From Adineta vaga (Eukaryota > Animalia > Rotifera), in assembly GCA_021613535.1 (NCBI GenBank), contig CP075494.1:1488001-1552000 (forward strand): a stretch of DNA of 64,000 nt, given 5' to 3'. The position numbers and the translations under genes are program-made. Positions 1,633 through 60,684 of this stretch are shown here, piece by piece. The notes beneath the pieces are model-generated. The model was given only the letters and a program-made list of their open reading frames with translations, was not told the origin of the DNA and did not search any database. How positions within the stretch are numbered: the first letter of the stretch is position 1; each line of letters opens with the position of its first letter.

Positions 1633-1683
1633 TTTTGAGGGTGTGGGTGTGAAAGAAGAACAGATACACCTACACCCTAAAGA
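1633..1683. repeat. Intergenic inverted-repeat element, copy 1
   Basis: TTTTGAGGGTGTGGGTGT-spacer-ACACCTACACCCTAAAGA. Confidence 0.9.
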
Positions 1684-1770
1684 TTTTCGTAATCATATGA
1701 ACTAGTACTGCTACTTTAACCGTCTGAAGAGTACCTTAGCAAGGGCGAAATCATGATCACGGCAGCTATA

Positions 1771-1790
1771 CTCACCCATCCACCCTCAAG
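1771..1790. repeat. Element, C-rich arm only
   Basis: CTCACCCATCCACCCTCAAG. Confidence 0.75.
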
Positions 1791-2198
1791 TAAATTGATT
1801 GATGGGACATACTATTTATAGTGGAACAATGTTTGTTAAGAGCTGTTATTACTGTTTCGTCACCCTCACTCTATTTACGAACTATTGAAAATAATTCTTT
1901 ATTTTTTATTTTATCTTTATTTCTATTTTATGAAGAATAAAAGTAACTCTTTTTCTTTTTCTTCATTGTAAAAATAAAGTAACAATCCTGTTTCTTACAA
2001 GATGACCCAAAGCGTCTACCTGCGCCATCAGATCCATTTTGTTTTTTTAAGTGTATAATGTCTTTGCTTATTGGTCTTTTGTTCTCGATCGACGCTTTCG
2101 CTTATCGCGGATTGTCAATATTGTCAGAAATATTTTTACCTTTATCTTTATATACTCTACAGTTTTCTGCCTATTTATTTTTGTTTCGTGATATATGG

Positions 2199-2250
2199 AT
2201 CTTGAGGGTGAAGGTGAGGATATGTAGAAATAATCGCACAACCACACTTC
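2199..2250. repeat. Element copy 2 (degenerate right arm)
   Basis: ATCTTGAGGGTGAAGGTGAG-spacer-CGCACAACCACACTTC. Confidence 0.7.
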
Positions 2251-2649
2251 TATCTTTTACGGTCAACAGCTCTTTCTATAGGAGTTAGAGTATCTATAAT
2301 TTAGCAATGTCTTTATTGACAATCGACATTTAGATTTTTTCCATTTTTTTCAGATGACGAAAAACAATGATCTTTTCATTCCAGAGCGGAAAAATAACTT
2401 GTTGTATATATGTTTTCTAGTTAATAATACGATTTGTAGTTGCAGTTTTTCTTCTTATATTTATAGACTCCAATGACCATAACAATCGTAACTATAAGAG
2501 TGGTTATGAGAGCATGTATCTTTCACGCTCATGCAGTCGCGTCATTTCTTTTTTTAACACAAACTCTGCTTTGATTATTCTAGATCCATAGAAAGATCAT
2601 TGTTTCCATAGGAATAATAAAAGTCCAGGCACGTATCAACATAATAGTT

Positions 2650-3738
2650 ATGAGTGGATATTTAGTTTTACTTGCAACTTTATTACTTTGTCATTTATCA
2701 AACAGTTGCTTCACTATTGTGCATTTGAACAATGATCCATGCTCATCTATTCAAGTTATTATTGCAAATAATCGAGATGAGAATATATTTCGCCCGACAG
2801 ATGATGCTGGCTACTGGCCCGGCGATCTTTCTTATATTTATGGTGGCCGGGACATTGTTCGAAATTATAGTACCTGGCTGAGTATGAACACAAAAACTGG
2901 ACGCATTGCAAATTTATTATTTCTAGCTGGTCAACGCTTGCCAGGCCCATCAATACCAAGAGGTCCTTTAGTATCTCTGTACCTACATTCAAACTACTCA
3001 TCTGTTAGTACAACTGCATAGATGAATGAATTTTACACAAATAGCCAAACATATGAAGGTGTTCATTTATTACTGCTCGATTATTCAGAAAAAGGTTATT
3101 GGAAACTACATTATTCGAATAATAATGAAACGGATGAGTCTAATGTTATTTTACAATCACTAGTATCCGGTACGTTTGTGTTATCGAACAATTTATTTGC
3201 AAGACCATTTCAAAAAGTTATATTCGGCAATAAAATGTTTAGCGATATTCTGGAGCATCATAATAATATACTTAATAAACATAGTGATACAGTCATTAAC
3301 AAGCAACATGTCGATTCCTTAGTTAATGATATAATGTATACTATTTTACAAAATCGCACTACCTTGTATAGAAATGGTCGCGATCAAAATCTTGATGATC
3401 GATTTTTAGCAACTGAACAATGGCAACTAGATGAAGTAAGTGCGATCGACGCAAACTATACGAATTTATGGGTAAATGCGCTAACAAGAACAAACACTGT
3501 CATACTTGTTTTTCAAAATGGTTCTACTATGTATATAGAAAGAACGCTAAAGTTTGATGAACGCAATAATTCATATTGGTTATTTACCAACAATACATTT
3601 GTAATTGAATCTATTAAAGGAAACAACATTTGCTCACAAAAAACCAGTCAGTCATCGAAACTAATCTGGGTCTATGAACATAGAATTATCTGGATCTTCT
3701 TCTACGTTATCGTCACATTAAGCGCTATTTCAACTTAA
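2650..3738 (+). pseudogene. TANGO2/NRDE-family protein with signal peptide and C-terminal hydrophobic tail, interrupted by an in-frame TAG at 3019-3021
   Basis: Motifs IANNRDE, GGRD, STWL, RGPLV, LSNN and TRTNTVILV. ORFs 2650-3021 and 3022-3738 are contiguous in the same frame. Confidence 0.75.
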
Positions 3739-4206: not shown

Positions 4207-4260
4207 GAAGGTGGGTGGGTGTGGGGCTACATCTATCTAACACCCACACCCACACCCTAG
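4207..4260. repeat. Element copy 3
   Basis: GAAGGTGGGTGGGTGTGGGG-spacer-CACCCACACCCACACCCTAG. Confidence 0.9.
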
Positions 4261-5099
4261 TTTTTTACTAAACCTTTGCTACGAAAGCTCTGTTCTGAAA
4301 ATTTTCAGTAAGGTTATACGTGGAACATTTTCTCTACTAAACCAAAAAACGATCTTCCCGTGTATCGGTGGAAAGATTCTTTTATGGTTCGGTAAAAATC
4401 CTTTTTTTTAGTGTAGTAGTCAAGTAATTTGGTTCATGAACCAGAGCAAATCTTTGCCTTATCTTATAAGCGTGTTCACAGGTCTGAAAAGACGCTTTGA
4501 TTAGCGACTCAGTGGCACTTTCAATGCGTTATTTATTATAATTCTTGAGAAACTGAAAATAACTTGTTATTAACCATAAAAGACAAAATTCTGACTGTGA
4601 TTTCTTTGATAAAACTACTGGGTTCATCGAAGAAATTGTTTTTAAGTAGAAGTTGTAGGGATATTTGTAACGTGTTGCTTCTCATTCAAAGTATTTGAGT
4701 ATTTGGAGTCTAATTACAATTCTTTCAGAAAAGGGTCAGCGAATCCCAAGGATGAGCGCCATTTATATTCTATCTGAAATTTTAAAATTAGGCTCAACTG
4801 TCGGTGTATTTCAAAATTTGATTACAATGATCTCAATTGAAATATGATCAAATAGCGCTGAAAGACGGAACTTCATTTTCTCTATCAGATGGTATAGAAA
4901 AAAACTTTTTTAGGTGCCTACTTTTGGTATGTTCTAAGTATTAAGTTAAAATTTATGCAACTATGAGGTTGTTTTTTCTTTTTCAAAATTTTATTGCAAT
5001 AAATGAAATTAAATACAACGTCAAAGAAAAACCTTTCAGGCAATATTAATAAAACTCAAGGATAAATATTTCACTTATTATTCTCGGAATATTTAATAT

Positions 5100-7638: not shown

Positions 7639-7690
7639 AGGATGTGGGTGTGGGTGAGAGAAGAAGAGATACATCCACACCCTCAGGATG
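7639..7690. repeat. Element copy 4
   Basis: AGGATGTGGGTGTGGGTG-spacer-ACATCCACACCCTCAGGATG. Confidence 0.88.
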
Positions 7691-8507
7691 GTTGTCATCA
7701 CTGAAATATGATGAAATAGAAGTAGAGATAATTGATTTCATTCATTTTCAATTAAAGAAAATGCTCATTATCATTACTCGCTCTCAAACTGACAGAATGG
7801 AAAAAAACAAATTTTCCAACTGTTATATTGATAAGATCTAACTTCTTTTTAATTAATTTATAGTTTTCATATGTGATATTGTTGTCTGACTACGTAACGG
7901 TCCAACGGTGTGAGGAAAATCGATAATGTGGAAACTTCAAGCTAACATTACACATCGTTCGTAATCATTCGTTAAAATTCTACTAACATAGCTGATTTTC
8001 TTGTAGGAAAAATATTAAAACAAAACTGGAAAAATGGTTTACAATAAAATGTAACGTCAAACTCGAATTTTTCGACATCGACTATCTTCGGTGAAGTATT
8101 GCTGAAAATCATATTGCCGCTAAATTATTACTATTTAACGATAAAGAACAAACGTGTTTCATTCACTCTGCCTATACCGTTCCTTCAATAGACAAAATTT
8201 TCTAAAAGTATATATCGTCAAGGACATTCTTGACTGTTGCCTTTCGTTGAGTCGAGAAAACAATTCATATAGATTGATTCATATAAAAAGCATCGCATTT
8301 ACCTTTATTACGACAAACAAAATATTAATTCAATCAAAGCAAATGAGAACGATTTCTTCAAAAAGTAATTATTGTAACTTTTATTTTCATTTGGTCGTAA
8401 GCTTCTGTTCTAGAACAAAGTTATGACAACAAATAAAGAGAAATTTTATTGAATTTTCAAATTGGAAATTTCTTCTTCTCCTTAATTCTCATCTTCACAT
8501 TGCTCAC

Positions 8508-9494
8508 ATGGCTTTTCTCTTCATACGCAATGAAACTCACATCAAGTTTTTTCTGCTACTGACGCTCTTTTTCTGTATTCTTTACTTTTATAATACAAAT
8601 ATCGATGAGTTTAAGAAATGGTCTCCAGTCCAATCGCACGTCAACGTTAGTAAACAACGTGATACGATTATATTAAACGGTCTTCGATGGTGTGAAAGAA
8701 ATCCTTTTATAAAAAGTTATAATAAACAGTTAGTATTAGATTTTGAACACAAATACAACTTGTGGAAACAAGATGAATTTGCAAGAATTTTTGATTTCAT
8801 CAAAAAATACGTTCTTTCTCCAAATAAAACAAAGGGAGAATTTCCTCAAATTCTCTATCCAATTACTGACATGTTACCGTGTCCGTATAATAACAATCAA
8901 ATGAAACGTTATGGTCTTTCAGATGATGGTGGAAAGTTTCTCTGTGGTTTAGAAATCTTATCTTTGACTGATTCTTGTACGGTATATAGTTTAGGCTCCG
9001 GAAATCATTTCACTTTTGAAGAATCGATTTTGGCACAAACTAATTGTACTGTGTACACTTTCGACTGCACAAGTTTTCCACCACAAACAAAATACGATCG
9101 GTTACATTTTAATAGAATTTGTTTTGGTGAAAATTCAACTATACAGCGCTATATTTATTCGAAATCGAAGAAATATTTAAATAATTCAATTTACGTGCGG
9201 TTCGATGAGATCTTGAAGAGAAATCATCATACTCAAGTACATGTTCTAAAAATGGATATTGAAGCTGGAGAATATTCTGTATTTCGAGATTTATTGAAGA
9301 AAAACAATACACAAAATTTACCATATCAAATAGCGTTTGAATCCCATTGGTGGAATGGAGATATATACCATAGTATGATGCATATATCCTTATTTTCACA
9401 ACTATGGAAAAGTGGTTATCGTCTTCTTCAATACGAACTAAACAAACATGAAACTTCTTGTGTCGAATGGACTTTTATGCGAATATTTTGCTAA
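8508..9494 (+). CDS. Type II membrane-anchored SAM-dependent methyltransferase (Methyltransf_22 / METTL24-like)
   Basis: N-terminal TM segment; motifs DGGKFLC, VYSLGS, FTFE, YTFD and LKMDIEAGEY; AATAAA at 9518. Confidence 0.82.
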   Translation: MAFLFIRNETHIKFFLLLTLFFCILYFYNTNIDEFKKWSPVQSHVNVSKQRDTIILNGLRWCERNPFIKSYNKQLVLDFEHKYNLWKQDEFARIFDFIKKYVLSPNKTKGEFPQILYPITDMLPCPYNNNQMKRYGLSDDGGKFLCGLEILSLTDSCTVYSLGSGNHFTFEESILAQTNCTVYTFDCTSFPPQTKYDRLHFNRICFGENSTIQRYIYSKSKKYLNNSIYVRFDEILKRNHHTQVHVLKMDIEAGEYSVFRDLLKKNNTQNLPYQIAFESHWWNGDIYHSMMHISLFSQLWKSGYRLLQYELNKHETSCVEWTFMRIFC

Positions 9495-9530
9495 ACGACA
9501 TTTCAATACATTTTCATAATAAAATAACGA

Positions 9531-9593
9531 TGAGGGTGTGGGTGCGCGTGTCGGCCAAGAAGATATAACTATACATCCACAACTCACCCTCAG
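9531..9593. repeat. Element copy 5
   Basis: TGAGGGTGTGGGTG-spacer-CATCCACAACTCACCCTCAG, starting 8 nt after the AATAAA. Confidence 0.88.
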
Positions 9594-11770: not shown

Positions 11771-11785
11771 TCTTGCGAGTGTGGG
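11771..11785. repeat. Element, degenerate G-rich arm
   Basis: TCTTGCGAGTGTGGG, 13/15 match to TCTTGAGGGTGTGGG. Confidence 0.45.
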
Positions 11786-12546
11786 CATATTGAATCAAAT
11801 GTCTGAGATGGCATTAGCAAAGGTGTAGACCGAAGATTGCACTTAGTAAGTACTTTAGTGTCTTAATGAAACATACATGGACATACGTATTAGCTTTCTG
11901 TTAAAATGTGTAATTCATCTGTAGATTATATGAATAACATAGAGTGTAATGAAATTTCTATCTTAAGATGTAAAATATTTATTTTCTCTTGCAAATTGTT
12001 AACTTTAAAAAAGGAACAATAAAATTGAATGCAAAAAAAAAGTGTAATGAGATCATCTCTTTCTAATTGAATCCAAACAATGCGTGTAACACTCTTAAAA
12101 AAATTTTAAAAGTGTTGTCGAAGAACATCTATTTCAAATTAGATTTTGAAAGAATATCTTTGTTACAGACATGTACATACACATGCTTTCACATACTCTT
12201 ATTCATCTGTTTCTGTTATCTTCTATATACATTCGTTATTATATGATTCTCGAATAGACAGATTGAGATTCGTCTCTCGAGTGAAGACATCGCCAATAAT
12301 CTTCAATCATTTTCATTCTATTCAGTCTCACAGTAATGAGAGCACAAGTGTGAATATAATCGATGTTTTCTTTTCATATAATTCTATTAATAATGAAATA
12401 TATTCCAGTAAGAACAAAGGAACAAATGGCACCGTTTTTTAAAAGATAGAATAAAGAAGATTTCTATAGATATGATTTATTACTTCGATTTGCGATCACA
12501 AGCCGCCTATTTTCCATTTATTATTTACAAAGAAATTCATCAAAAT

Positions 12547-16475: not shown

Positions 16476-16553
16476 GAGGGTGTAAGTGAATGAGGGTGAC
16501 TGTGGGTGTCTAAAATGTAAACAAGCTACCCTCAACCGCGCCCGCACCCTCAA
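16476..16553. repeat. Element copy 6 (doubled arms)
   Basis: GAGGGTGTAAGTGAATGAGGGTGACTGTGGGTG-spacer-ACCCTCAACCGCGCCCGCACCCTCAA. Confidence 0.85.
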
Positions 16554-16569
16554 CATAGGCTCGCTGCGT

Positions 16570-16802
16570 CTGCCGGTAACGCTGTGATGGAGTTGTCACG
16601 CTGTCGGTCACGTCTGTGATGGGATCATTAAGTCTGTAGGTCAATTCTATGACGGGATCATTGAGTCTGTCGGTAACGTCCGTGATGGATGATCGCCCCC
16701 TGTCGGTAACGTCTGTTAGGGGTAATTTAGCTGGTCGGTGACGTCTGTGGGGGAGGGCGAATTGTTCTTTACCTTGTCGGTCACGTCTGTGGGGGGGGGG
16801 GA
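16570..16802. repeat. GC-rich array of 7 repeats, core TGTCGGT(A/C)ACGTCTGT, with variable linkers (period ~31-43 nt)
   Basis: Copies start near 16570, 16601, 16634, 16667, 16700, 16731 and 16774. The array ends in a G-run followed by AGTCCAAATTTCTGCCCTTAA. Confidence 0.8.
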
Positions 16803-16887
16803 GTCCAAATTTCTGCCCTTAAACACTTCAACACTCTCTTTCAGATCGTGTTTCACAAAATGAGGTTACAGATAAAGAAAATATTAA

Positions 16888-20900: not shown

Positions 20901-20947
20901 GGGTGTGGATGAAATCGAGGGTGGGGGTATTGACCTGGGTGTGGGTG
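20901..20947. repeat. Element, G-rich arms only (three tandem partial arms)
   Basis: GGGTGTGGATG, GAGGGTGGGGGT and TGGGTGTGGGTG. Confidence 0.7.
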
Positions 20948-21493
20948 AAATTGATTTTACAAAAAATTTATTATTTTGTTTTCGAAAGCTTATACATATT
21001 TGAACAATAACATGCGAGCTGTTTTCTCGTATATTAAGTTGCCAGATCAATTCGTCTCGCTATTGGGACAAACTAAAAATACTTGTCCTCCACAGTCGAG
21101 GGTTAAGTAAGTCAGCATGGCGAGCGTTACTTGTTTTTTAATTAAAACTATTGAAAAGCTATATCATACGATTTTGAGTTTACTTACAATATCAAAATTC
21201 TCTAAGATCTGCTATAGATCTTATATGTGAAAATAAATCTAATAACGTTAGTATAAGGAAAATCATAGTTTTCTAAATCATTCATCATTTCTTAGAAGCG
21301 CATAAATAATATATGTCAAAACTGCTAATATTTATTGTAAGAGCAGAGAAAAATCTCTTTAAAGAAATATTTTAATTTATCTTTGAATATGCTTGAGAAA
21401 AATATTCACTTCAAATGAATGAAAGGTTTTCTTTCTCATAAAGTATTTGAAATTGATTGATATTGTTGGAAGATATGTTTATATTTGAATAAA

Positions 21494-21563
21494 TTAAGGG
21501 TGTGGGTGAGAGGGGAGATAGAGTAAGATGCAACCTCAACCGCATACACATCCACACCCTTGA
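21494..21563. repeat. Element copy 7
   Basis: TTAAGGGTGTGGGTGAG-spacer-CACATCCACACCCTTGA. Confidence 0.88.
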
Positions 21564-22704
21564 AATATTATCGACTCACAATTACTATTGTCAACTTAAT
21601 TGTTCCTGTTTCAATAAATAGCTACCATCTATCTATTGCACATTACTACTCGACGTAAACAGGGATTATAGCTACTACGACTGTAGACAATATTTTCTTC
21701 ATAACACTGAAAAAAACACTTGTTTCGTTATGTTTGTCCATATTATGTCTCATTCGATTTGACCATACACGCCTTATCTTCTCTTTTACGTTAATTTGTA
21801 TAAAATACGAGGATATTGAGAAACATCATTTATGATGATGCAGTTTTAAACCTAAGAGGAGCCCATTTAGCTGATAAGAAAATATTATGAAATAAATTAA
21901 GCAAGTACCGTATGCAAGATAAGAAATCTTTTTTTTTTGTTTAATGGACATGACTTTTGCAGCTATTTTTTATCATAATTCATACTAACTGTTATCGGAT
22001 GACTCATATAGTTGGATATTTCTTTCTTTCCTATTCTTGCAGTATGTCATCTACATGGTGACAAATCTATGGGAATTCAACCACTATTCAAGCAACGTTT
22101 TTTGCTATCTTTTTTGTACTGATCACAATATTAGATTGAAAAACACAGGTTTCGTATATACATAAAAGCTTTTATATGCTTGAAAACGTTTATAAACACG
22201 ATTTTAAAAAAATCTACGAAACTTTAAAAGGATCTGTCCGCGCGGATACACGGTTAAAACTATTTCCTAAATAGTATATCTTAAGCAAGAAGGTAAGTGC
22301 AGATATCCAACATCCAGAAATATTGCAAGATACCAAGATGTCGATTGGATATTTGCAAATTTTTAGATCTATCTATGTGTAGTGTTAGTTTACTGACTAC
22401 TGACTTTCACTAATACTGATATTTTTCGAGTATTTCTATGCTTAAACTGTAACTACACATGCATATAGTATGATACCTCCTTATGTCCTTGTGTATAGCG
22501 TATCCAAGCCATATTGGTACGTGTGAAAGTATAACTAAGATGAATTAAAAGTACTTTCGACATTTGTTATTTCGATTTCTCTTCCAATATGAATGTCGTG
22601 AGCGTTTAGTAAATAAAGTTAGTTATAGATGATACATCGTAGATCCAATTCCACATTAATACAGATAAAGATCTTCTACATTTTTCATTTTAGTTTGATA
22701 CGTA

Positions 22705-43248: not shown

Positions 43249-43791
43249 GGTAAATAATATGGGAAAAAATGACACTGTTCTTCCATGTTGTGTTCGGGTA
43301 TATATGTATATAAAAGCTGTTGCGTTTGCTCTCACCACTTATGATGGCTATCGATGTTAGATATATCATAAGAAACGTTTTTATGTTAGAATAGGAAAAA
43401 AACGATGTTGTCGTGTTTGATATAACAAGACTGAGATGTATATCATCCACGAAAAAGAAATACTCGTCCGTACTGTTTTTATCTGTCGTTAAAAGATATA
43501 TACATTATCAATTTTGCACGTAGAAAAAATGATTGATTCATAGACAAATCATACGATTCAGATTCTTTTTTTGAAAAATTTTTGTGGTGTAATCTGATTT
43601 TTAAGTTAATATTTATGGGATTTCTTTATTGTTTGTAATATTAATCTATATACGAGTAGAAATATTTTTACGTCAACAGCCAATCAATCAAACATGGATG
43701 ATAAAATAACGTCAACAACGAGATTTAATTATTATTCGACGTATTTTCATTCTTATTGGCTTAATAATAATGCTTGAAATTCCATATTTTG

Positions 43792-43844
43792 TGAGGACAT
43801 GAGTGTGGGTAATACTTTTTTCTTCACCCATGTCCACACCCACA
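43792..43844. repeat. Element copy 13
   Basis: TGAGGACATGAGTGTGGGT-spacer-CACCCATGTCCACACCCACA. Confidence 0.78.
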
Positions 43845-44289
43845 TAACACGTTAGCACAGTGACTATTCTATAATTTCATATATTTATCTTTAAAAAATG
43901 ATATAAATATTAAACACGCGATAAAAATATGCTTGTTTATTGTGAGAGACCGTAGACATGAATATCATTACTGCGATACTCACATTCTCAAAAGAATTAA
44001 AAAGTCTAGAAACGAATAGTAATTTATAGAAAGTACAATTTCATTATAAATTGATGATAATGAAAGACTAAAAGTTAACCATCTAATAATATGTGACACT
44101 TCTTAACTATAATTGGAATTTAAAAGAAAAGATAAATCTTTTGTGTCACACTATTTCATATCTTAAAAAGAATAGCATTTTACTTCCTGAAATTATTAAG
44201 TACCAAGACCTCATCAGAAAAAAGATATTTTAATCTCTTTCACAAAGAAAAATAAAGTACATCTAAAATTTTGTCTAAAAAGACGCATT

Positions 44290-45393: not shown

Positions 45394-46176
45394 ATATATA
45401 TTTCGTTTTGTTTATGTTTTTTCTAATAAAATGAAATCAATTAACAGAAATGCTACGATTGATTACTAATATAATGTAAATAGGACAATAGGGAAAAAAA
45501 GAAGAGATGATAAAGTAATGTTAATTTTTATTGAAAAGATGCCTATTGCACGTTATAGATGGATGAGATTCAATTGATAATGTTCTTAACAATTACCGAT
45601 TTATATAATCTTTGATAATAATCAAATTTATTTTTCTCGTTTAAATAGATATCACTACACTTATTTTGACAGATAAAAATTACAAATATGGTTGATGCAA
45701 TAAATATACGACAACAAATGCACTATTATCAGTGAATTATTAACTGATGAACAGATTACTTTATATTTATCTTCTACATTGCTGAAAACCTTCTATTTCA
45801 TGGAAATAATTCTAATTTCAAAGGTTTGCCATTATATACAAGATAAAAATGATCGATAAAGAAAGAACTTGTTTATGTAATGCGCTAATTAATGGAAAAA
45901 ATTGTCAACTTCGTTATATCAATGTCCAATTGAATACTATTCTAAACAAGGGAGGAAAGTGCAGGCACCTCAGCACACTCCAAAACTATGGTAAGTATTG
46001 AGGGCATCTAATCTACACTTTTTCCTTTGATATTATTTTTTGCATAGAAATCTTTTTCATATTTATTAATAAATCGATATAGTTAGAAGAAAGATTAAAC
46101 TATATCATTTCATGATATCATGAAATTTGTTTGTAGAAATCGTTCTTCCTAACTTATCCTGCTCGAAATATTAATC

Positions 46177-46233
46177 GGTGTGGGTGGATGAATGATACTC
46201 TTCTCTTCACTCCCACCCACATCCTCAAGATGG
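46177..46233. repeat. Element copy 14
   Basis: GGTGTGGGTGGATG-spacer-CTCCCACCCACATCCTCAAGATGG. Confidence 0.85.
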
Positions 46234-46944
46234 TACAAATGGTGCTTGTACTACAGGTTATTCAGTGTACGAATGCTATTTTAAACAGTATTGCAACTCC
46301 ATTTGTTGGAAAAAATGATTGTGTTTAGTCAGCTGACAAATATCAATGTTATGGACTTATGCAGATGATTGTAACACAGCTGGACCGTTCTTAGCAGGGT
46401 CAGCTGTTCGTGGTGTAGATTTCACAGATCATTAATTGCGAAATTCTCTACAATTATCATTTTGTGGATCACTTTAATAGAGAAAAGATTAAACATAATG
46501 ATGATATTACTTCAATAAACAGAGAATGTAGGTGAAGAAAAATGTCTACAACACATCTACATCCAACCCTTTTATTGTATATTTATTTCATTTATTTCAA
46601 CAATGCTTATTTCTACTATCTTTGTTTTACCATCTAACAAAAAACCTATTAAAAAAAGACATATGATTCCTCGAAAGAAATCTTATATATAATGATCCTC
46701 ATCCCTCAAAAGTATTATATGTTGTATTATCTTCTTCATTAATAAATTATTTTTAGAAAAACAAATCCTTATCGCTGAGTTATGAAAATTTCATCTGGAC
46801 GTTTGTTTAGTAGAATGTAATTATTATTCTATTTTTATTTTGTTATTCGTAACTAGAAACTTGTCGATATGATTACACATTCTGATCTTCAAACTAAGAA
46901 AAAAACATGTTCATTAAAGTAGATATTCATTAATTGAAGAACAC

Positions 46945-47958
46945 ATGTCGAATTTAACAAATCAAAATAATGAAATATTACCTGATTTATCACGAGCCTT
47001 AATAATTCTTCCAATAATGGACAAATATATGTTATTAGTTATCTACACGAGTGGAGTTCTTGGTTCATTATTAAACATTATTACACTTCTTCAGAAAAGA
47101 TTTCGTAAAAATCCATGTTCATTATATTTTCTTTCGGCTTCTATTACTGATTTTTGTATTATGAATGCAGTTGTGATGACCGATGTTCTTAGACATCTAA
47201 ATCCCCCACTATTTGCTTATATCAATTTAACTGTAATTTGGTGTAAATTACAACAATATTTAATATATCTTTTATCTTGTTTATCATCTACATTTATTAC
47301 TCTTGCATGTATTGATCGATTTTGTACAAGTTCACGTAGCTCACAACTTCGTAAACTAAGTCAAATAAAAATCAGTCGTATAATTATTCCATTCGTATTA
47401 TTAGTATGGATTTTGTTTTCATTACATATGCTTATTTTATATGATGTCGTAGTATCAACATCAACAAAATCAGCTCAATGTCAAACACCATCTTATGCAG
47501 CGATGTTTGTTTTGATTTTTCATGGTTATTTCTTTGCTTTGTTTAATGGTGCAATTGTTCCTCTTTTTCTTTCCATTTTTGGGTTCTTAATTTATCGAAA
47601 TGTACGTTTAAGTCGTCGTCGACGAATCTCACCTACAATGAATATAAATAATAATCCAAATATAAATCGACAGAATTTACATTTAATAATTATGTTATTA
47701 GTACAAGCAAGTCTTACAGTGATTTTAAATATTCCTTATATGACAGTTTATCTAAGAGGATTATATTATGGAGTACCAACTGAACAATATCTTCTTCTTC
47801 TCTATGCGATATCTGTATATCTCGCTCGATGGTTTTGGTTTCTTAACTACGCTAAAACATTTTATCTTAATAGTTTATCAAGTCAAATATTTCGAAATGC
47901 TCTTAAACAACAATTACTCGGTTTTATTCATCAATCAAGAGTTTCAACTTTGACATGA
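46945..47958 (+). CDS. Rhodopsin-like GPCR
   Basis: NPCSLYF, ACIDRF and FYLNSLSSQIFR; seven TM segments. Confidence 0.88.
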   Translation: MSNLTNQNNEILPDLSRALIILPIMDKYMLLVIYTSGVLGSLLNIITLLQKRFRKNPCSLYFLSASITDFCIMNAVVMTDVLRHLNPPLFAYINLTVIWCKLQQYLIYLLSCLSSTFITLACIDRFCTSSRSSQLRKLSQIKISRIIIPFVLLVWILFSLHMLILYDVVVSTSTKSAQCQTPSYAAMFVLIFHGYFFALFNGAIVPLFLSIFGFLIYRNVRLSRRRRISPTMNINNNPNINRQNLHLIIMLLVQASLTVILNIPYMTVYLRGLYYGVPTEQYLLLLYAISVYLARWFWFLNYAKTFYLNSLSSQIFRNALKQQLLGFIHQSRVSTLT

Positions 47959-48335
47959 ATAATAAATTGAACTCGATATATTTTCATTTTAAAAGCAAAT
48001 AAAATAATAACTAAACTAAAACAATGAACATTTCACTTTTCTATCATTATGATTTGAGATGATCCATTATTTTAGCTAAAAGCTGTCTTGACTGTGTATT
48101 CAGATAAAATTTAGTTAGATAAACTTTTGATGGTATAAAGATGAATAAATGTCCATATAGGAAAGCAATAAGAAGAGTTTGTATTTCTGGGTTGATTATC
48201 CCAATTACATTTATATACAAACGTTAGTGTAGCAAGAGCAAGATCTATATTACAAAGATATAATTATGACAATAAGAAGAGATTGGCAATGAATACCATT
48301 CACTTTATTTTATTAAAATATATGATCAAACTCCT

Positions 48336-48411
48336 TTGACGGTGGATGTGAGTGTATCTACTTTGTATTTACTCTCATCCTTATCCACACCCGCCCACAC
48401 CCTCAAGATGG
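48336..48411. repeat. Element copy 15
   Basis: TTGACGGTGGATGTGAGTGT-spacer-CCACACCCGCCCACACCCTCAAGATGG. Confidence 0.88.
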
Positions 48412-48649
48412 CAACTAGTTGCCTCTTAAATTTTAGAGGCAACCGGATTTTAGAGTCAACTCCGACATATATATAGATATGATAACTATTCAAACAATTC
48501 CGATATAAAAAAGATTCTGGTTAAAACTATTATCTCTTAATTGGTTTTATTCTCGATCAATTACAAATGAAACATTGCATCGGGAACGTCTTTATACAAG
48601 AATTTATTTAATACTCTTCTTCATATCTATATTGATATTAATTATCGTT

Positions 48650-49612
48650 TGTTTATCACACAAATAAAAGCAACTTTTCATCCTGTATGTATGAGTAGTT
48701 GTATTGAAAGTAATAGTGAATGGATTTATTGGCTTAGTGGAAGACGTTATGGCATAGAATCGATATACTTAGCTGATTTTCGTCAGTGGGGTAGTGCATT
48801 TTTTATTTGAATTGGATCATTTTGTACATTAGCCAACATAACTATAAATAATGCTATTGCTAATTTTCAATCGACATCTCTCCTTATTAATCAACCAATG
48901 ACTCGTAATCAATTTCAATCCGAAATTAATTTACAAATTGATCGATTTTTAAATGGTTCACGTAATAGTTTTGCTCAAATATTAGAATTTTATCAAGATA
49001 TGATACAAGGAAATGCGTTGATGTCTTTTTATGCTACGAACTGGATGCCAATAATAAAACAATCTTATAATACGAGTAATATCACTGTTTTTACTAAACC
49101 AATTCTATATAATTCATCATGTTCTTGTTCTATTACACGTACTTGATGGTGTTCAACGTGGTTGTTCTCTACTTGAATCATATTCAGCATCGTCTCTTTC
49201 ATGTTTTTATTCAAATTCATATTTAGTTTCATTTTTTGAAGCGACAGCACTTGGTGTTGAAAATGGTACAATAAATCCATGGTACAGTCGTTTTTATATT
49301 CCGGAATTTAGTCCATTGAATGGCTCATCACTAAAACATTTTTCCATTAATGATACTTTTAAAACCATTGTTAATGAACTCTTTATCGGTGCTTCGTTAA
49401 CAAACATATCTTACGAACCATTTTTTAATGAATGTGCTGTTCATTATTGTTCCTATTCGATAATACAACGTTTTAATTTTCTTTATGTACTTACAACATT
49501 TCTTAGTCTTTTCACTGGAATATCATTAATTTTTCGTATTATCATACCGCATATAGGAACCATTATGACTTTCCTGAAAAATAAGATACGTATTAAACTA
49601 CGATTTGCTTAA
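48650..49612 (+). pseudogene. Decayed member of a Cys-rich uncharacterised transmembrane family
   Basis: FHPVCMSS, DFRQ, SFCTLA, CSCS and ISYEPFFNECAVHYCSYS followed by a C-terminal TM. In-frame TGA stops near 48808 and 49144, plus frameshifts. Confidence 0.65.
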
Positions 49613-49693
49613 ACATTTATTGTTCTCATTAAATTATATAAGCTATTATTAACTAGTCAGTAAAATAAATGAAAAGGCAGTAAAAATTTAGAA

Positions 49694-49724
49694 TGTGGAT
49701 ATGGGCGTGAGTGTGAGCGTAGGT
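49694..49724. repeat. Element, degenerate G-rich arm only
   Basis: TGTGGATATGGGCGTGAGTGTGAGCGTAGGT, with a hexamer-periodic TGTGGG-like pattern. Confidence 0.65.
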
Positions 49725-49746
49725 ATTTCTGTATTTAGATTTCGTT

Positions 49747-51537
49747 TCAACGAATCCATATTCGAATAAGGATGCTGTTGAGCGTCTGTCTTGTTACACA
49801 AACGGATGGCAATTGCTGGCGTAACCATTCGAGTAATTCATTATCAATATCGTCTATGAAATCATCTTCCACAGAATCATCTTTCTTAGTCCAATAGTCA
49901 TCCTCGCATTCGACAGCTAACGCTTGCAGATTCGGCATATTGTTCAGAAGATCAAGTATGTTTTGTCGAGTTTGCACTCTGATCAGAAGTGTGACGCACT
50001 GAATACCTAACGGCGAACGAGTCAGCTCATAACATTGTTCTTCATTGAAGCAACACCATGTATTTTGACTTGTATATCCTCGAACGTCCAATTGACGTAC
50101 TGAAGCACTGGTCAACTCCATCGGCGGCATGGGGGAATTGGCTACCGCCCATTCATTAAAAGTGAGCGAGCGGAGAGAAGGCGCCAGATCAAGTACGGAT
50201 TGCAGTTGTGAGTAAATATCAAGACTTTTGTCTGAACGGACGAAGACCTGGAGTGAGTTAAGTTGTTCGAAGTTGGGAACATTGGAGAACAATAGTTCTT
50301 CGATCGGAAAATATAGCGAAAGCGACCGAAGATGACGAAAACGAACACTGGATAGGCTGAAATTTGGGAAACATAGCGGATCGTAGATTAAGTGCCGGAC
50401 ACGATCACATATTAAGTACTCGTCAGCGTCTGGACAAGTCGATCTGCTTAAATCAGAAAGATAAGCACCGGTGAATTCATCGGAAGCATACGGGACGGTA
50501 AAAACGTCGTAGTCATCGAAATCACTTTCGTCATCGGACTTGTGCCAATAGCACCGAACAAACCACTGGTGTTCTTTGATCCAAAACTGAGATCGGAATG
50601 AATTAAGAATCGCCTCGGTATGGCTATCTTCAGAGGTGGGCACCGCTAATCTCATTTTGAACTGCAAGATTTTTAAGTGAGGTAAATACTTTCGGATCAA
50701 TGCTTCCCATTGATTTCCATCTATATAGATGGTGCGCGATTTCAAGGTGAGATGATTTAAATTGGGTACACTCTGGAAAAGGTGTGATAAAGTATGCGTC
50801 TTAGTAATGAAGAGAATGCTTATGTTTAGTCGAGTGATCGAAAGATGAACTGGTAATGGCGCAACTGGCCTAGAACGATCGTAGAAATTCAGCGAGAGGG
50901 ATTGAAGGGAAGGTGTAAACTGACACAAATGATCAAATGTTGATAAGGATGAGGTTGAACTTTGGATAGTTAAATTTCGAAGTGAAGTAGATACATGCGA
51001 TGGATTAGGAAAATAGTGTTCATAGTGAGAATGGACATTCAGACAACAGTAGATTAGTTTGGGTAACTGCCATATTTGATTGTGGAAACGCTGCAGATCC
51101 GTATCTTTCACAAGAATAGCGCTATGAAGAATTGTTAGATTTGTCAGACTAGGAAGGTAAGCACATTCGATCATTAGTCGATCGAGCGTTTGTTGCGACT
51201 GGAGATGCGATAATGATAATGATTGTAAATGAGTGAATTGACGAAGTTGAAAATAATTGAGAGAAATAAATAATTCAATCAATTGGGGAGTATCGTCATC
51301 GTTGGAGAGATGAACGGAAATAATTTGATCAAGGATCGATGGAACATAGGTTTGACAAATAAAAGTGACATCCGTTTTGGACATCGATTGACAATCGAAA
51401 TGAAATTTATGAAATCCTTGTGTAAGTAATTTGGTCAAACGTGAATTGAGACTGTAAAATCCATGGAAAATATGTTTGAGAGATAAATATTCGAATATAT
51501 CAATTAGAATTTCATTAGGTAAATCTTCAAAATTCAT
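49747..51537 (-). CDS. F-box protein with degenerate LRR region, intronless
   Basis: N-terminal F-box FEDLPNEILIDIFEYL and LxxLxL repeats; 596 aa. Confidence 0.85.
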   Translation of the reverse strand: MNFEDLPNEILIDIFEYLSLKHIFHGFYSLNSRLTKLLTQGFHKFHFDCQSMSKTDVTFICQTYVPSILDQIISVHLSNDDDTPQLIELFISLNYFQLRQFTHLQSLSLSHLQSQQTLDRLMIECAYLPSLTNLTILHSAILVKDTDLQRFHNQIWQLPKLIYCCLNVHSHYEHYFPNPSHVSTSLRNLTIQSSTSSLSTFDHLCQFTPSLQSLSLNFYDRSRPVAPLPVHLSITRLNISILFITKTHTLSHLFQSVPNLNHLTLKSRTIYIDGNQWEALIRKYLPHLKILQFKMRLAVPTSEDSHTEAILNSFRSQFWIKEHQWFVRCYWHKSDDESDFDDYDVFTVPYASDEFTGAYLSDLSRSTCPDADEYLICDRVRHLIYDPLCFPNFSLSSVRFRHLRSLSLYFPIEELLFSNVPNFEQLNSLQVFVRSDKSLDIYSQLQSVLDLAPSLRSLTFNEWAVANSPMPPMELTSASVRQLDVRGYTSQNTWCCFNEEQCYELTRSPLGIQCVTLLIRVQTRQNILDLLNNMPNLQALAVECEDDYWTKKDDSVEDDFIDDIDNELLEWLRQQLPSVCVTRQTLNSILIRIWIR

Positions 51538-51802
51538 CGTATGTTAGATAAATATTCAAAGTAATATGAATACGGTTGGAAGTGTTTTTCGTAATAGAGG
51601 TAGTGACGACTGAAGAGAGAAATAAATATGTCTGCATGACGCTTGTTTTTCACGTGACAATTTATACATCATTCGGACGAGAAATTAGTCATGGCTGTCG
51701 TCATCGTAGTCAACGAGTGTGACATCCGATATTGCATAGAATGACAATACTTCTCTTCTGTTGATTCAATACAGTCACGAGTAAGTGATATCAACGTTCG
51801 AT

Positions 51803-51822
51803 CACCGACACCCTCAAGATGG
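51803..51822. repeat. Element, C-rich arm only
   Basis: CACCGACACCCTCAAGATGG, followed by TACAA as in copy 14. Confidence 0.85.
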
Positions 51823-51985
51823 TACAATGTTTTTTCTGATTTTTGACCTTTCACAAACAAACAAATCTTTTTAGTTTTTTTTCGTATCACCCTCACTTCA
51901 GTACAAGACAACAATGAAAATTAGTAAAGAGATGAGCAAAAAATATTGATATGAGTTACAACGTTATATATGTATATAGTTTGAT

Positions 51986-53041
51986 TCATGTCTTTGCTTT
52001 TATTCGAAGCATTTGAGGAGGGCGAATAACTGATCTTCGTTGTACGCTTTCTCTAGTCCCATGTGTTTGTGCTGGTCTCGTATTATTCTGTGTTTGTATG
52101 GTTCCAATCCTATTGCCTGTTCGTAGACGATGATATTCTTGCATAATCCATCGAGTTAATTCAGGAAAGAAGCCAAGCCACATCCATGGAAGGAAAAAAT
52201 AAGTGATATAAATGAGATCACCAAAATAATTTTGTTCAACATAATTAAGAAAAGTTGGATCAATGAGAACATTGACAATATATACTGTAAGAAATGGTGC
52301 CCATCCAACTAAATAAAGTCCTGAAACAGAGAATAATTGTATTAGCATACGTCGTTGTTGTCGCCATCTTGTTGATTGTTGCATACGGCGTTTCTGTAGA
52401 AATACTCGTATAATTAACACTATATTTGATATAATATCGATAAAAACTGGCATACTATTGTTAACTACGAGATCAAATGAACCAAGAATGCTTCCATACA
52501 TTAAATAACAATTAGCAAAGCCACATACTCGACTACTAAAATCCCATTGAGTATTATCACATGGATACAAAACGATCGCATATACATAGAAAATTGTTGG
52601 ATAAATAATACAGAGTAAAAGTGGTACATGATGTAACAGAATAGCTATCCAACGTTTTCTCAAAAGATTATGATAGAAAATAAATATATGTCGTTGAAGA
52701 GATATAATTGCTATTAGATATTCACTTGAAGCATATATAATATATTCAAAAAATGTCCACCATATACAATAACTTGGAACAGGTGGACTTACATACCCAT
52801 GAATATAGAAACTAAGACTTAGTGGTATGTCAAATACAAGTTGTATTGAATTTACCATGAGTAAAACAAATAATCCATGGTTTTGTGATGCTTTAAGTGA
52901 AGTACGATGTTTTGCAAAATAAATGAAGATAAAAATAGAAACGATGATCGATGAAATTTGTAATAATAATAATATTGTAAATTTAATACGATAGAATATG
53001 AATTTACTGTTTCCAACGACTTCCAAATCGGTGATGTTCAT
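51986..53041 (-). CDS. Rhodopsin-like GPCR (same subfamily as 5100-6050)
   Basis: YCIWWTF, ISLQRHIFIF and LHHVPL parallel FCIFWVT, ASIERHIFIF and FHYLPL in the 5.1-kb gene. Confidence 0.85.
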   Translation of the reverse strand: MNITDLEVVGNSKFIFYRIKFTILLLLQISSIIVSIFIFIYFAKHRTSLKASQNHGLFVLLMVNSIQLVFDIPLSLSFYIHGYVSPPVPSYCIWWTFFEYIIYASSEYLIAIISLQRHIFIFYHNLLRKRWIAILLHHVPLLLCIIYPTIFYVYAIVLYPCDNTQWDFSSRVCGFANCYLMYGSILGSFDLVVNNSMPVFIDIISNIVLIIRVFLQKRRMQQSTRWRQQRRMLIQLFSVSGLYLVGWAPFLTVYIVNVLIDPTFLNYVEQNYFGDLIYITYFFLPWMWLGFFPELTRWIMQEYHRLRTGNRIGTIQTQNNTRPAQTHGTRESVQRRSVIRPPQMLRIKAKT

Positions 53042-55915: not shown

Positions 55916-55975
55916 GCATCTTGAGGGTGTGGGTGGAAAGTGACTTGTAAGACTGCCACCCATACCTGCCCTTAA
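55916..55975. repeat. Element copy 16
   Basis: GCATCTTGAGGGTGTGGGTGG-spacer-CCACCCATACCTGCCCTTAA. Confidence 0.9.
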
Positions 55976-57578: not shown

Positions 57579-58591
57579 ATGCGACTTGTAATAGTATTGT
57601 TTCTCGGCGTTTTTCTCTCATGTGTAGAAAGTTTGTTAATTCGTTTCTTCGTGTATGCCTTTTCACAATATGTACTATTTCTAGGTCAAACTACAGAAGC
57701 ATCTACTTATTCTTGTAATGAGAATAATGGTAATATCAAATTTACATTATCTTCGTCGCCTCATTCTGCATGGAATCCAGATTCAAACTGTTCTTTGCAA
57801 CAATGTCATGTAAGCTCGATTAACAGTTGTTCTTCGTCGTCAACACCTTGCTTCGACTATCGTACGTTCGACAATAGTAGATATTGTGCACCTGGTATTC
57901 TATGTTCAATTTTGGAGCCATGCAACAATATAACATTTACCTGTGCATCAAATACTTCAGTGTGTATAGTTAATTCGTGTTGCTCGCCACAAGCAATGTG
58001 TTTGCCGTTATTATCGACAAATTTCTGCATATCAGGTGATGACACTCTTTAGATTGAGATTTGTGAGTGCTCAGAAGCGAATGAAAATACTTTGTCATTT
58101 CAAACTCACGATTGAGTCTGCCCCTATAACATCATCAAAGGATTTTGCTTAACAAACTTGAAACGTTTTCTCAGTCTAAAGACCGTTAAAATACTTTGTA
58201 CTAAAAATAACAGGTAGTATTCATTTTAAAGTATCTCGCCGATCAGCAGGCAATCTGCAATGTTCGATGATATAGTGCTTTTTAGTCTGAGTATATTGAA
58301 ATGATTCTTTTAGGATGGTTTAATATTGCCAGTATGAATTACCCACGGCAATGGCATACATCATCCGTATTATCCAATGGAAAAGTGTTAGTTACTGGTG
58401 GAATGAGTGATAGTAGTACTTATCTAAGCAGTGCTGAATTGTTCGATCCATCAACAGGAACTTGGACGACTACTGGCAGTATGAATAATGCACGAAGTCA
58501 GCACACAGCATCCGTATTAACCAATGGAAAAGTATTAGTTACTGGTGGAATGAATTATACTGACTATCTAAATACTGTCGAGTTATATTAA
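57579..58591 (+). CDS. Secreted protein with a Cys-rich domain and two Kelch repeats; exons 57579-57630, 57685-58035 and 58314-58591
   Basis: Signal peptide MRLVIVLFLGVFLSCVE, Cys-rich CAPGILCSILEPC...CIVNSCC, in-frame GT-AG junctions, and AATAAA after the stop. Confidence 0.75.
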
Positions 58592-58789
58592 TTATTATAA
58601 ACACACTTACAATAAACTGTTTTTTTTACTTACTATCACCAGTAGTCTCAATTTCAAATACTGTTCTAGTAGCATAACTGTCTTGTTCTAATAATAATGT
58701 AGTGTTTTCTTCAAAGTCTGTGTTAACGTTGATTAGTAACATTCATTTGAAGGACGTAGATCAGCTAAAACTTAAATCGGTCCACTGAG

Positions 58790-58839
58790 TTGAGGGTGTG
58801 GGTGTGATTATTCTTTTCGTTCGACACCCACACCCTCAA
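58790..58839. repeat. Element copy 17 (perfect 16-bp arms, 18-nt spacer)
   Basis: TTGAGGGTGTGGGTGT-GATTATTCTTTTCGTTCG-ACACCCACACCCTCAA. Confidence 0.95.
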
Positions 58840-58935
58840 AATTATGTTCATAAATATATTCAATATATTTTATTTGAAATTTTTATCGTAGTTTTCTTAT
58901 AGAATGATTCTTTTTAAAGAAATGTTCGACATCGA

Positions 58936-60199
58936 TCAGCAATTATAATATTTTTTAACTTTTTGTATATCAGTTGAAGTAAGTTTCACGTTCATAGCAT
59001 GAATGTTATAACCTGGATATGTAGGTACAAATGCTGGTTTACCATTACTTGAATAGGAATAATCAGGATAGTGCATGATGGAATAATAATCATATGGCAT
59101 ATTCATTGTAGTAAAATAATCTGCACTATACTTATCATAGTTATATTGGAATTCTAAAAGAAGTAAGAATGACAGTGAAATCTATTTGTTAATAATTTTC
59201 AAAAAATATGACATACTTGGATCAATATTTGCCCAATTCATTTTGACATAATAATCACGATCAGGTCTCTGATGTTCATGACCGAAACCAACAGCATGAC
59301 CTAGTTCATGAATATATTGTCCAACACTCATACATGTTGGAGAATACATTTTAACATATTGTCGTCCACCTTGACGACCAATATATGAATAACAATAATT
59401 ACTTGTTCCATCATCTGGTGTTAATTCGATATAATCACGATCAGCATTTGTTTTCGGTGCAAATCGAATACATGTTTTTGAATGCCATTCTTGAATGACT
59501 TGTGCAATGACTGCTCTCTCATTACTATTGTATCGCGAACTGATAACATATGGCACTCGAGCATTAGGCCATTTATATCGTGAGTCTCGCCATACATTCG
59601 CACGAGCTGAAGATGATTGTTTGGGTAATTCCTCACGTAAATCTGTAAGATTTATACCAATTTGTTCGTTAGTTAAGGTTTTAGATCGTTCAAAATCTTC
59701 TTCAGTTAAATAAGGTAGAGGAGATTGTAATTGCATAGAATCATTTTGAGTCAGATTGATGACTGACGGATCTAAAAAGAACAACGAATCCAATAAGTAA
59801 TGATAGAGTTCTTCGATGTCAAAACAAAATCGTATACTTACTGATCTTTAGATTAACAATAGGTTTACTTCGCTGATAAACTACAATAAATACAGCAGTC
59901 AAAAGCGCACCTATTACCAGCAAAGCTAATACACCAATAACAAATATTATTTTCTTGAAATAGTTTGATTTTTGTTGTCCAATCCTGAATAAATGAAAAA
60001 CAGACAAAATTTAATCAGTATTTGCGCTTGAACTACTTAGTTATATGTCTTACTGCTTCATTGTTCTTTCCTGAACAATCGGAATAGAACTGTGGATGCC
60101 AGATTGAATACTAGGAAACGAAGAAGGATATACATGGAATATGGTATTTTGTTCATTCGATAAATTCAAATTTCGATCATCTTCCATCGAAAGAGACAT
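58936..60199 (-). CDS. Astacin-family (M12A) zinc metalloprotease with an N-terminal membrane anchor; 4 exons
   Basis: Zinc motif HELGHAVGFGHEHQRPDRD, WPNARVPY, and Met-turn YDYYSIMHY. Exon 1 is 60199-60054, the TM exon starts at 59984, and the protein ends KKYYNC*. Confidence 0.88.
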
Positions 60200-60608
60200 T
60201 GTCAGGTTGAAAGTGTAATGAATGGATTGAGATACTTTTAACTTTTGTTATAATGTGTATTATCTGTTATAAAATATTATTGATGAGAAAAGCCCTTTAA
60301 ATATCTTGTTTATTCACGCTTCATAAATTACGAAAAAAGAATGAATGTATATTGCGTTCCAGATAAATATTTACAATTGCGTCAATAGGTTGGCTTTCCA
60401 ACATAAAACACAGGTAGAGTCATAGTTTGTCATGTACGTTACTCATTCTATACAATTGCTCGAATGATTCATTTCGATTTTCTATCCTAATTGACTTCCG
60501 TTCTCGTTCGATAGACAATGTCACTAAGTGGAAAATTTTGTTATGTTTTAAATGTTTCTTCATTTGAAACGATTACTCAATATCATAAATATTTCAATCG
60601 GATTTATG

Positions 60609-60684
60609 TTTGAGGACGTGGGTGTGGGTGTGAGTCTAGTTGACGATAGTACCCTCATATTCACATCTACCCCACCCTTAAGAT
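60609..60684. repeat. Element copy 18
   Basis: TTTGAGGACGTGGGTGTGGGTGTGAG-spacer-CACATCTACCCCACCCTTAAGAT. Confidence 0.88.

Follow-up and report, generated by a model that had tools for sequence, protein, structure and literature searches.

Bdelloid rotifers survive massive chromosome breakage, and their load of foreign genes, which is very high for an animal, lies mostly near the chromosome ends. Several described systems place telomeric repeats away from the chromosome terminus. In vertebrates, repeats made by telomerase are found inserted at breaks, and two tracts stand head to head in 3 of 41 loci of the class of interstitial telomeric sequences (ITS) that is called TERC-ITS, an arrangement that its authors attribute to the action of a second enzyme at the other end (PMC8537989). 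In bdelloids, including Adineta vaga, the telomere repeat is (TGTGGG)n (PMC8494291, PMC7943196), and short stretches of it have been described in the chromosome ends, enriched near transposons and foreign genes (PMC2861651, PMC7943196, PMC11258130, PMC8494291). Stretches of (TCACCC)n lie beside (ACACCC)n at the 3′ ends of Terminons (PMC6431247), and host genes have been reported as captured between telomere-associated units (PMC6431247; PMC2861651). In the AV20 assembly of A. vaga, there are six chromosomes, the scaffolds end in (TGTGGG)n, and the regions near the chromosome ends are dynamic and rich in foreign genes (PMC8494291), and telomeric repeats together with Athena fragments at deletion breakpoints of A. 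vaga lines were read as neotelomere formation, from which scars are expected (PMC13564844). Here, we analyzed a 64,000-nt stretch of A. vaga DNA (the window; contig 5, positions 1,488,001 to 1,552,000, in an assembly of 100.8 Mb with six contigs and ~30% GC), in which an initial annotation had described 18 two-armed copies and five single arms of a short inverted-repeat element and had compared the layout with integron cassette arrays. The arms of these modules are the rotifer's own telomere repeat, facing head to head. In the explanation that we favor, to which we assign a probability of roughly 0.4, the modules are scars where two telomerase-capped broken ends were rejoined, with spacers copied from older modules.

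The conserved arm core of the initial annotation is real, but its sequence is that of the telomere: GGGTGTGGGTG represents two units of TGTGGG, and the arms as a whole are (TGTGGG)n with TGAGGG variants. The GAG of CTTGAGGG belongs to such a variant unit, which is also found inside long arms (e.g., at locus L043) and corresponds to the (TCACCC)n of Terminon 3′ ends, while the annotated (CAT)CTTGAG is this variant plus an extension that a minority of arms carry. The orientation of the two arms is nearly invariant. Genome-wide, a G-strand arm followed after 8 to 38 nt by a C-strand arm occurred 516 times per strand, as compared to 4 times for the C-then-G, or tail-to-tail, order, which is here identical to the reversed pattern used as a control; in 270 kb of examined sequence, the two orders occurred 71 and 3 times, respectively. 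This near-exclusive order therefore indicates that the two arms of a module arise jointly, with their telomere ends facing each other.

We determined the anatomy of the modules from 65 distinct two-armed copies. Arm lengths had a median of 16 to 17 nt and ranged from 9 to 169 nt, with the two arms differing by at least 10 nt in 17 copies, and some arms formed long irregular arrays (loci L023 and L043). The spacer measured 18 nt at the median (range, 8 to 47 nt), and the predicted hairpin of a module was much more stable than those of shuffled sequences (median z of −5.8). The spacers had been called unconserved, which does not hold for about 40% of the copies, since these belong to three recurrent families, which are marked by GTGAAGAAGAT (A), AGATAGATGTA (B), and AAGAGTATAG (C). 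Family B shows a constant phase between the telomere repeat and the spacer on both sides. One of the long arrays shows an additional order of repetition: The 168-nt C-arm at L043:1466-1701 (contig 1, ~681.2 kb) contains a higher-order CCCTCA/CCCACA pattern that is repeated ~2.5 times, which suggests that unequal exchange, besides telomerase, contributed to the growth of this arm.

At their outer ends, the arms carry a characteristic start signature. In a set of 70 arms, taken from the window and loci L039 to L065, TTGAGGG was matched at 78 to 88% per position, while the CCATCT beyond it was matched at 31 to 72%, which equals what random positions gave under the same best-match procedure. The extension was essentially complete (at least 10 of 12 positions) in 14 of the 70 arms, and CCATCT was present in only about a quarter of arms. 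Past the first position that deviated from CCATCT, going outward, the match rate dropped to 0.31, where base composition predicts ~0.25; this drop argues against a mutated transposon end, which would continue to match well beyond a mismatch. The signature is specific to the outermost unit: Among A. vaga arms that had not been chosen via CTTGAG, the outermost hexamer read xGAGGG in 30 of 55 arms, as compared to 15 of 111 inner hexamers (P = 3e-5). The same preference was found in two further species, as an A preceded the outermost GGG in 7 of 11 arms of Adineta steineri (1 of 16 inner units; P = 0.002) and in 17 of 36 arms of Rotaria sordida (2 of 129 inner units; P = 2e-11). Some A. steineri copies at locus L075 carry CATCTTGAG or CTCAAGAT. 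In a few full-ended copies (L042, L015, L018, and window 36457), no target-site duplication (TSD) was visible by eye, as the initial annotation had likewise noted. Its proposal that each interval is a unit with inward-facing terminal inverted repeats survives in part: The polarity of inward-facing telomere ends is there, but fixed terminal repeats are not, as the arms are unequal and their outer end varies.

Two ideas about the outer end were dropped. A polarity between one randomly healed end and one templated end turned out to be an ascertainment effect of loci picked for a perfect C-arm, given that genome counts of the side on which the extension lies, relative to the orientation of the family-B spacer, were 10 versus 9. 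A reading of the ATG in CTCAAGATGG as a start codon or splice donor was rejected by eye in several copies, where downstream frames closed fast and the orientation of the neighboring gene was inconsistent. The arm motif also seems unlike the bdelloid spliced leader.

The modules lie in intergenic gaps, and they are concentrated in the terminal few megabases of the chromosomes. Consistent with the initial view of the arms as noncoding, 20 of the 23 copies and single arms in the window fall outside open frames of at least 80 codons, in a region where frames of at least 100 codons occupy 46% of the sequence; the distance from a module to the end of an open reading frame (ORF) ranged from 24 to more than 2000 nt. 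The two-armed copies fill 15 to 16 inter-ORF gaps, as compared to 11.5 ± 1.5 for random noncoding placement (P = 0.002 to 0.014), which bears out the suggested spacing of about one copy per intergenic interval, albeit on a rough gene map made of crude blocks of open frames. Against real gene calls, at the A. steineri locus L075, exactly one module or arm was present in 5 of 7 intergenic intervals, and annotated loci from further bdelloid assemblies showed the same kind of module between genes. Across the A. vaga genome, the 16-mer arm with at most 1 mismatch gave 747+749 matches as compared to 15+7 for its reversed control, and the 20-mer CACCCACACCCTCAAGATGG gave 160+162 matches as compared to 0. 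Among 89 listed exact sites of this 20-mer, all but four or five were located within ~4 Mb of a contig end (manual count), in agreement with a clustering toward chromosome ends, which the initial annotation had raised as a question. In a metagenome scan, 5 of 7 matches were chance hits within high-GC bacterial genes, while two low-GC environmental contigs, Ga0116226_10392844 and Ga0116228_10355231 (L071 and L072), end in typical modules with the full CTCAAGATGG extension and presumably represent bdelloid DNA in environmental samples.

The modules evolve neutrally in their substitutions. We compared versions of two loci, four from A. steineri and four from R. sordida, which are 90 to 99.8% identical, and found every alignable module in all versions of its species, i.e., without any presence/absence polymorphism among haplotypes that are 1 to 8% diverged. 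Turnover is therefore slow, at odds with the rapid turnover of units that had been proposed. Substitutions amounted to 47/1750 (0.027) in modules and 504/19203 (0.026) in the 250-nt flanks, where the comparisons are partly nonindependent given that some versions are nearly identical. These equal rates give no sign of purifying selection on the arms, whose supposed conservation thus does not exceed that of the surrounding DNA. Length changes were more frequent in the modules, with 0.081 gap nucleotides per aligned nucleotide as compared to 0.033 in the flanks, mostly in steps of 6, 12, 18, or 56 nt, i.e., microsatellite-like. In an A. vaga paralogue pair at 85 to 89% identity, the spacer was retained while the arms had decayed through indels.

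Modules sometimes mark the joints of rearrangements, while most rearrangements ignore them. Among 14 distinct structural variants of at least 40 nt between the aligned versions, 3 break at a module, where ~4% would be expected by a rough estimate. One of these is a plain arm-length change, and another, a 140-nt indel between direct repeats, lies 12 nt from the module. The third is a 2154-nt indel in R. sordida (L082:6032-8186 versus L078:7934), the right edge of which coincides with the outer edge of a G-arm. At this junction, ~16 extra nt of telomere repeat are present in the short allele, and the extra DNA of the long allele contains a further module and no annotated gene. The breakpoints at the element that the initial annotation had looked to haplotype alignment for do occur, but in few of the variants.

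Further joints were seen within the A. vaga genome. A segment of the window (37054 to 39991) is duplicated on contig 1 (13,135,856 to 13,139,537; L054 and L061) at 85 to 89% identity, and its homology begins right at the outer edge of the G-arm at window 37040 (contig 1, 13.136 Mb). At its other side, the homology ends within an ORF for an AIG1-like GTPase/coiled-coil protein (~39987); this gene may be truncated in the window, because the window copy stops soon afterward while the paralogue continues in a coding-like manner. For the FG-GAP gene of the window (29481 to 33863; 1460 amino acids), a 95% identical partial copy exists on contig 3 at ~16.70 Mb (L059), where homology to the window (33868) is lost 5 nt after the stop codon and 10 nt before a degenerate module. 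On contig 1 (~188.65 to 188.96 kb; L009:1316-1630), a module is located at the center of a palindrome with ~115 nt per arm at 98% identity; the palindrome arms occur nowhere else in the genome, and their appearance is that of a fold-back or sister-fusion product and not of a repeat family.

We infer from these data that telomerase synthesized each arm onto a free broken DNA end, as in the formation of a neotelomere. On such a nontelomeric end, synthesis would start at a position of the RNA template that lies further 3′ than the one used to add normal repeats, yielding a fixed register in which (T)GAGGG comes first, sometimes after up to CCATCT, and TGTGGG repeats follow; the predicted telomerase RNA template would read CCCACACCCUCA and then AGAUGG. 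Two ends capped in this way would then be joined, whereby the order on either strand would necessarily be G-strand, spacer, C-strand. Because two G-rich tails cannot pair, one tail would invade an older module, copy the spacer and the C-arm of that module, and subsequently anneal to the other tail (synthesis-dependent strand annealing). Such a copying step would yield spacer families without a transposase, a fixed repeat phase at the spacer, free arm lengths and outer junctions, and the head-to-head order only, and the central spacer would be what a palindrome needs for stability. The joined ends could be the two sides of one break or the ends of unrelated fragments, and in the latter case modules would come to lie at the joints of gene-sized pieces. 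Scars within genes would be purged by selection, while the remainder would drift neutrally.

A number of observations weigh against this explanation. The one-per-gap spacing is more regular than simple random scarring predicts, and 11 of the 14 structural variants between haplotypes make no contact with a module. The aligned haplotypes contained no empty allele from which an insertion at a break, or a lack of TSDs, could be read directly; the loss of homology beside the FG-GAP gene copy and the 2154-nt indel are indirect cases. A transposon family, too, would be expected to yield spacer families in which the repeat phase is constant on either side. Conservation of the spacer between genera, convincing by eye, was not significant against shuffled sequences (z of 0.8 and 1.4), so that no conserved RNA source of the spacer can be claimed. 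To our knowledge, no telomerase RNA has been described from a bdelloid, which makes the register of the template a prediction.

Among the alternatives, we took most seriously a very short nonautonomous transposon of the miniature inverted-repeat transposable element (MITE) or foldback type, with telomere-like terminal inverted repeats, which would be moved in trans by some transposase and whose subfamilies would appear as spacer families. The dispersal of hundreds to thousands of copies, each in unique flanking sequence, the recurrence of spacer families whose junctions with both arms keep a fixed phase, the symmetric arms without polarity, and the intergenic location all fit such an element, and foldback elements elsewhere have arms of tandem repeats with variable length. 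Yet the few full-ended copies showed no TSD by eye, and a fixed terminal sequence is missing, with CCATCT in about a quarter of the arms and a match rate close to base composition beyond it. The arms are often very unequal in length, the start signature is common to two genera while the spacer similarity between them is nonsignificant, insertion polymorphism is absent among haplotypes that are 1 to 8% apart, and some modules sit at rearrangement junctions instead of inside collinear DNA. Profile searches of the genome for the Y1 transposase (PF01797) and for a circovirus-type Rep domain (Viral_Rep, PF02407) gave 0 matches, where other transposase families were not searched and where the PF02407 result is weak because control genomes were silent too. 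Overall, we regard a transposon origin as doubtful. A one-step patch, in which telomerase or an Athena-type reverse transcriptase copies a hairpin RNA (e.g., telomerase RNA around its template) into a break and thus makes the whole module at once, has precedents in vertebrates, where telomere repeats and telomerase-RNA fragments were inserted in one step at breaks and where one Xenopus locus combines the head-to-head arrangement with an RNA-derived piece (PMC8537989). The conserved start register with its CCATCT/AGATGG extension looks templated, and the repeat phase is constant at both spacer junctions. We nevertheless find this patch rather improbable: Arm lengths vary widely and independently, contrary to what a single fixed RNA template predicts, several unrelated spacer families coexist within one genome, and no candidate RNA gene was identified, with an Rfam search of the window returning no family.

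A different proposal concerns the present use of the modules and not their origin and is compatible with the other explanations, namely, that they are selected cis-elements (boundaries, insulators, or termination hairpins) between subtelomeric genes, acting through a telomere-repeat-binding protein or through an RNA or DNA hairpin. It would account for the roughly one copy per intergenic gap, which is evener than random in A. vaga and was also seen against real gene calls in A. steineri, and for the symmetric design, which offers the same stable hairpin to transcripts from either side; the transcript of one expressed gene, encoding an F-box protein, indeed ends at a G-arm. Selection on such a function is nonetheless improbable, since the modules substitute at the rate of their flanks with more length changes, the arms decay through indels in paralogues, the distance to ORF ends varies from 24 to more than 2000 nt, and the copies are nearly confined to chromosome ends, though genes everywhere need boundaries. 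Least probable by far is the integron-like system of the initial annotation, in which the hairpins would be attC-like sites for site-specific recombination and each interval a mobile gene cassette. Hairpins that combine variable loops with arms noted as conserved, and that separate single genes of unrelated function in either orientation, do invite the comparison, and a few segment boundaries fall on modules. However, the arms are telomere repeats of unequal length that are not conserved above background, a fixed site structure is lacking, and 11 of 14 structural variants ignore the modules. Haplotypes showed no presence or absence of cassettes except for the one indel without an annotated gene, and no recombinase candidate was found among ten scanned window ORFs, with no genome-wide search for tyrosine or serine recombinases made. 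Very little thus remains of the cassette reading.

Three more specific candidates were also rejected. A bacterial REP/RAYT system (repetitive extragenic palindromes with their associated tyrosine transposase) is at variance with the eukaryotic nature of the genome, as evidenced by bdelloid-only homologues, and with the 0 matches to PF01797. A rolling-circle origin was considered since the reverse strand of one family-B subvariant reads TAGTATTAC (e.g., contig 4, 950,017 to 950,050, reverse strand), which we take to be the replication-origin nonanucleotide of circoviruses and nanoviruses; the other subvariants lack the nonamer, and PF02407 had 0 matches. A hammerhead or Terminon 3′ end was not supported either, as Rfam found no family in the window and a core-motif scan of 270 kb gave a single, chance-like match, and we judge spacers of 8 to 47 nt to be mostly too short for a hammerhead.

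Within the window, the 16-mer arm CTTGAGGGTGTGGGTG gave 16 matches at up to 2 mismatches, as compared to 0.01 expected from shuffled sequence, and looser scans together with direct reading recovered the G-arm/spacer/C-arm structure at 17 of the 18 places noted as two-armed. The eighteenth is only in part as described: At 2199 to 2247, a G-arm with a ATCTTGAG extension faces a weak second arm (CACAACCACAC). Family-A spacers were found in the modules at 1633 to 1682, where the spacer is purine-rich, and at 7639 to 7691, where the C-arm is followed by CTCAGGATGG, while the module at 4207 to 4262 has a family-B spacer in reverse orientation. The two-armed module at 9531 to 9593 begins 37 nt past the stop codon of a methyltransferase ORF (8508 to 9494). 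A degenerate two-armed module at 16476 to 16554 lies near a G-rich stretch (16746 to 16804) that includes a run of 11 G, and further two-armed modules are present at 21494 to 21564 and at 24205 to 24262. The module at 34120 to 34192 has a perfect C-arm and lies 257 nt past the FG-GAP gene; in that at 36457 to 36555, the spacer is long and G-rich, and each arm carries the extension; and the degenerate one at 37032 to 37105 forms the left edge of the segment duplicated on contig 1 at 13.136 Mb. After a two-armed module at 40484 to 40542, the next, at 43792 to 43850, is located ~290 nt upstream of an ORF (43163 to 43504) and has a similarly placed module in an old paralogue (L058). In the modules at 46174 to 46232 and at 48336 to 48414, the C-arm runs into CTCAAGATGG, and that at 55916 to 55975 combines a perfect G-arm with a GCATCTTGAG extension. 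The 16-nt arms of the module at 58790 to 58840 are 100% complementary, so that this copy is probably young, and the last two-armed module extends from 60609 to 60684. The five single arms fared similarly. Four were found as annotated, namely, a degenerate C-arm at 1771 to 1790 that ends in CCCTCAAG, a cluster of G-arm pieces without a C-arm at 20901 to 20948, a degenerate G-arm at 49694 to 49723, and a C-arm followed by CTCAAGATGG at 51803 to 51824, while the G-arm at 11771 to 11787 is weak.

A profile scan of ten window ORFs identified a sulfotransferase, an FkbM-type methyltransferase, a tetratricopeptide repeat (TPR) protein, the AIG1-like GTPase, the 1460-amino acid FG-GAP protein, the F-box protein, two rhodopsin-type receptors, and a Kelch protein. 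The FG-GAP gene is a candidate for foreign origin because its FG-GAP_3 repeats are of a type that we take to be typical of bacteria. The F-box protein has bdelloid homologues only (Rotaria species, A. steineri, and A. vaga), and its gene (49747 to 51537, minus strand) is flanked by the single arms at 49694 and 51803. Over the 5.9 kb of the window that we surveyed for RNA-like contigs (46100 to 52000), these contigs covered this gene only (stretch 49658 to 51590), leaving both neighboring receptor genes uncovered in the RNA runs used, and those of the F-box transcript terminate at 49658 to 49694, i.e., at the single G-arm. An F-box gene adjoins a rhodopsin-type receptor gene both in A. steineri (L073:10001-12938) and in the window (49747 to 53041), albeit in different relative orientation; the two F-box proteins share 44% identity and are orthologues only as candidates.

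The modules bear on the question of how broken or foreign DNA gets stitched into bdelloid genomes. If they are joints of capped ends, then they would constitute a genome-wide fossil record of thousands of events, with each junction marked to the base pair. The start signature would then provide a testable prediction on the telomerase RNA template, and the head-to-head rule a simple diagnostic in irradiated or desiccated lines. A stronger version of the scar explanation, which we consider unlikely, holds that the chromosome-end regions were built piecewise from gene-sized fragments, native or foreign, that were telomerase-capped at both ends and joined cap to cap. If true, such assembly would offer a concrete route by which horizontally acquired genes are integrated and subtelomeric genes are reshuffled, and the register of the telomerase RNA template would be readable from the junction signature (...CCCACACCCUCAAGAUGG). 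If the modules are a transposon family or boundary elements instead, they would likewise be a novel type of element based on telomere repeats. Under any of these readings, the integron analogy should be abandoned.

Compared with known systems, the modules share features with several and coincide with none. Like bacterial REP and bacterial interspersed mosaic elements (BIMEs) and integron attC sites, they are short GC-rich extragenic palindromes that occur in many copies between genes; unlike these, they are eukaryotic, have telomere-repeat arms, and come with no Y1 (RAYT) transposase (PF01797), no conserved site structure, and no integrase that we found. Foldback transposons and the ciliate elements TBE1 and Tec likewise have inverted arms of short tandem repeats or telomere-like terminal repeats, but these have defined ends, TSDs, and transposase genes, none of which was found for the modules in a few copies inspected by eye and two domain searches. 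The bdelloid Athena/Terminon chains share TGTGGG with its TCACCC/TGAGGG variant and occupy the same compartment (PMC6431247; PMC2861651). Terminon arrays, however, run head to tail with their repeats pointing one way and carry reverse-transcriptase genes and hammerhead motifs, whereas the modules are 40 to 100 nt in length, inverted, and free of a hammerhead in an Rfam search of the window and a motif scan of 270 kb. Telomere-telomere fusions, such as that in human chromosome 2, and A. vaga neotelomeres (PMC13564844) likewise bring G- and C-strands head to head, but the modules differ from fusions in having arms of two to a few repeats and a specific spacer, in being very numerous, and in lying between single genes.

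Closest to the modules are the vertebrate ITS and TERC-ITS (Sola et al. 2021, PMC8537989), which likewise consist of short internal telomere tracts and which, given their untidy junctions and the lack of any transposon, are ascribed to telomerase at breaks. In contrast to TERC-ITS, head-to-head order is the rule in A. vaga (516 versus 4), with hundreds to thousands of copies and with spacer families, and the modules further differ in their TGAGGG ± CCATCT start signature, in their bias toward chromosome ends and intergenic gaps, and in that no piece derived from telomerase RNA was identified, for which the CCATCT/AGATGG extension and the spacers are only candidates. The inverted two-armed module, its near-exclusive orientation, its start signature, and its spacing of about one per gap seem new: We found none of these four features described in the literature, where primary papers of 2005, 2007, and 2017 lay outside our search and a prior description is possible. 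We tentatively assign the modules of A. vaga to the interstitial telomeric repeats made at repaired breaks, of which they would be a new variant form.

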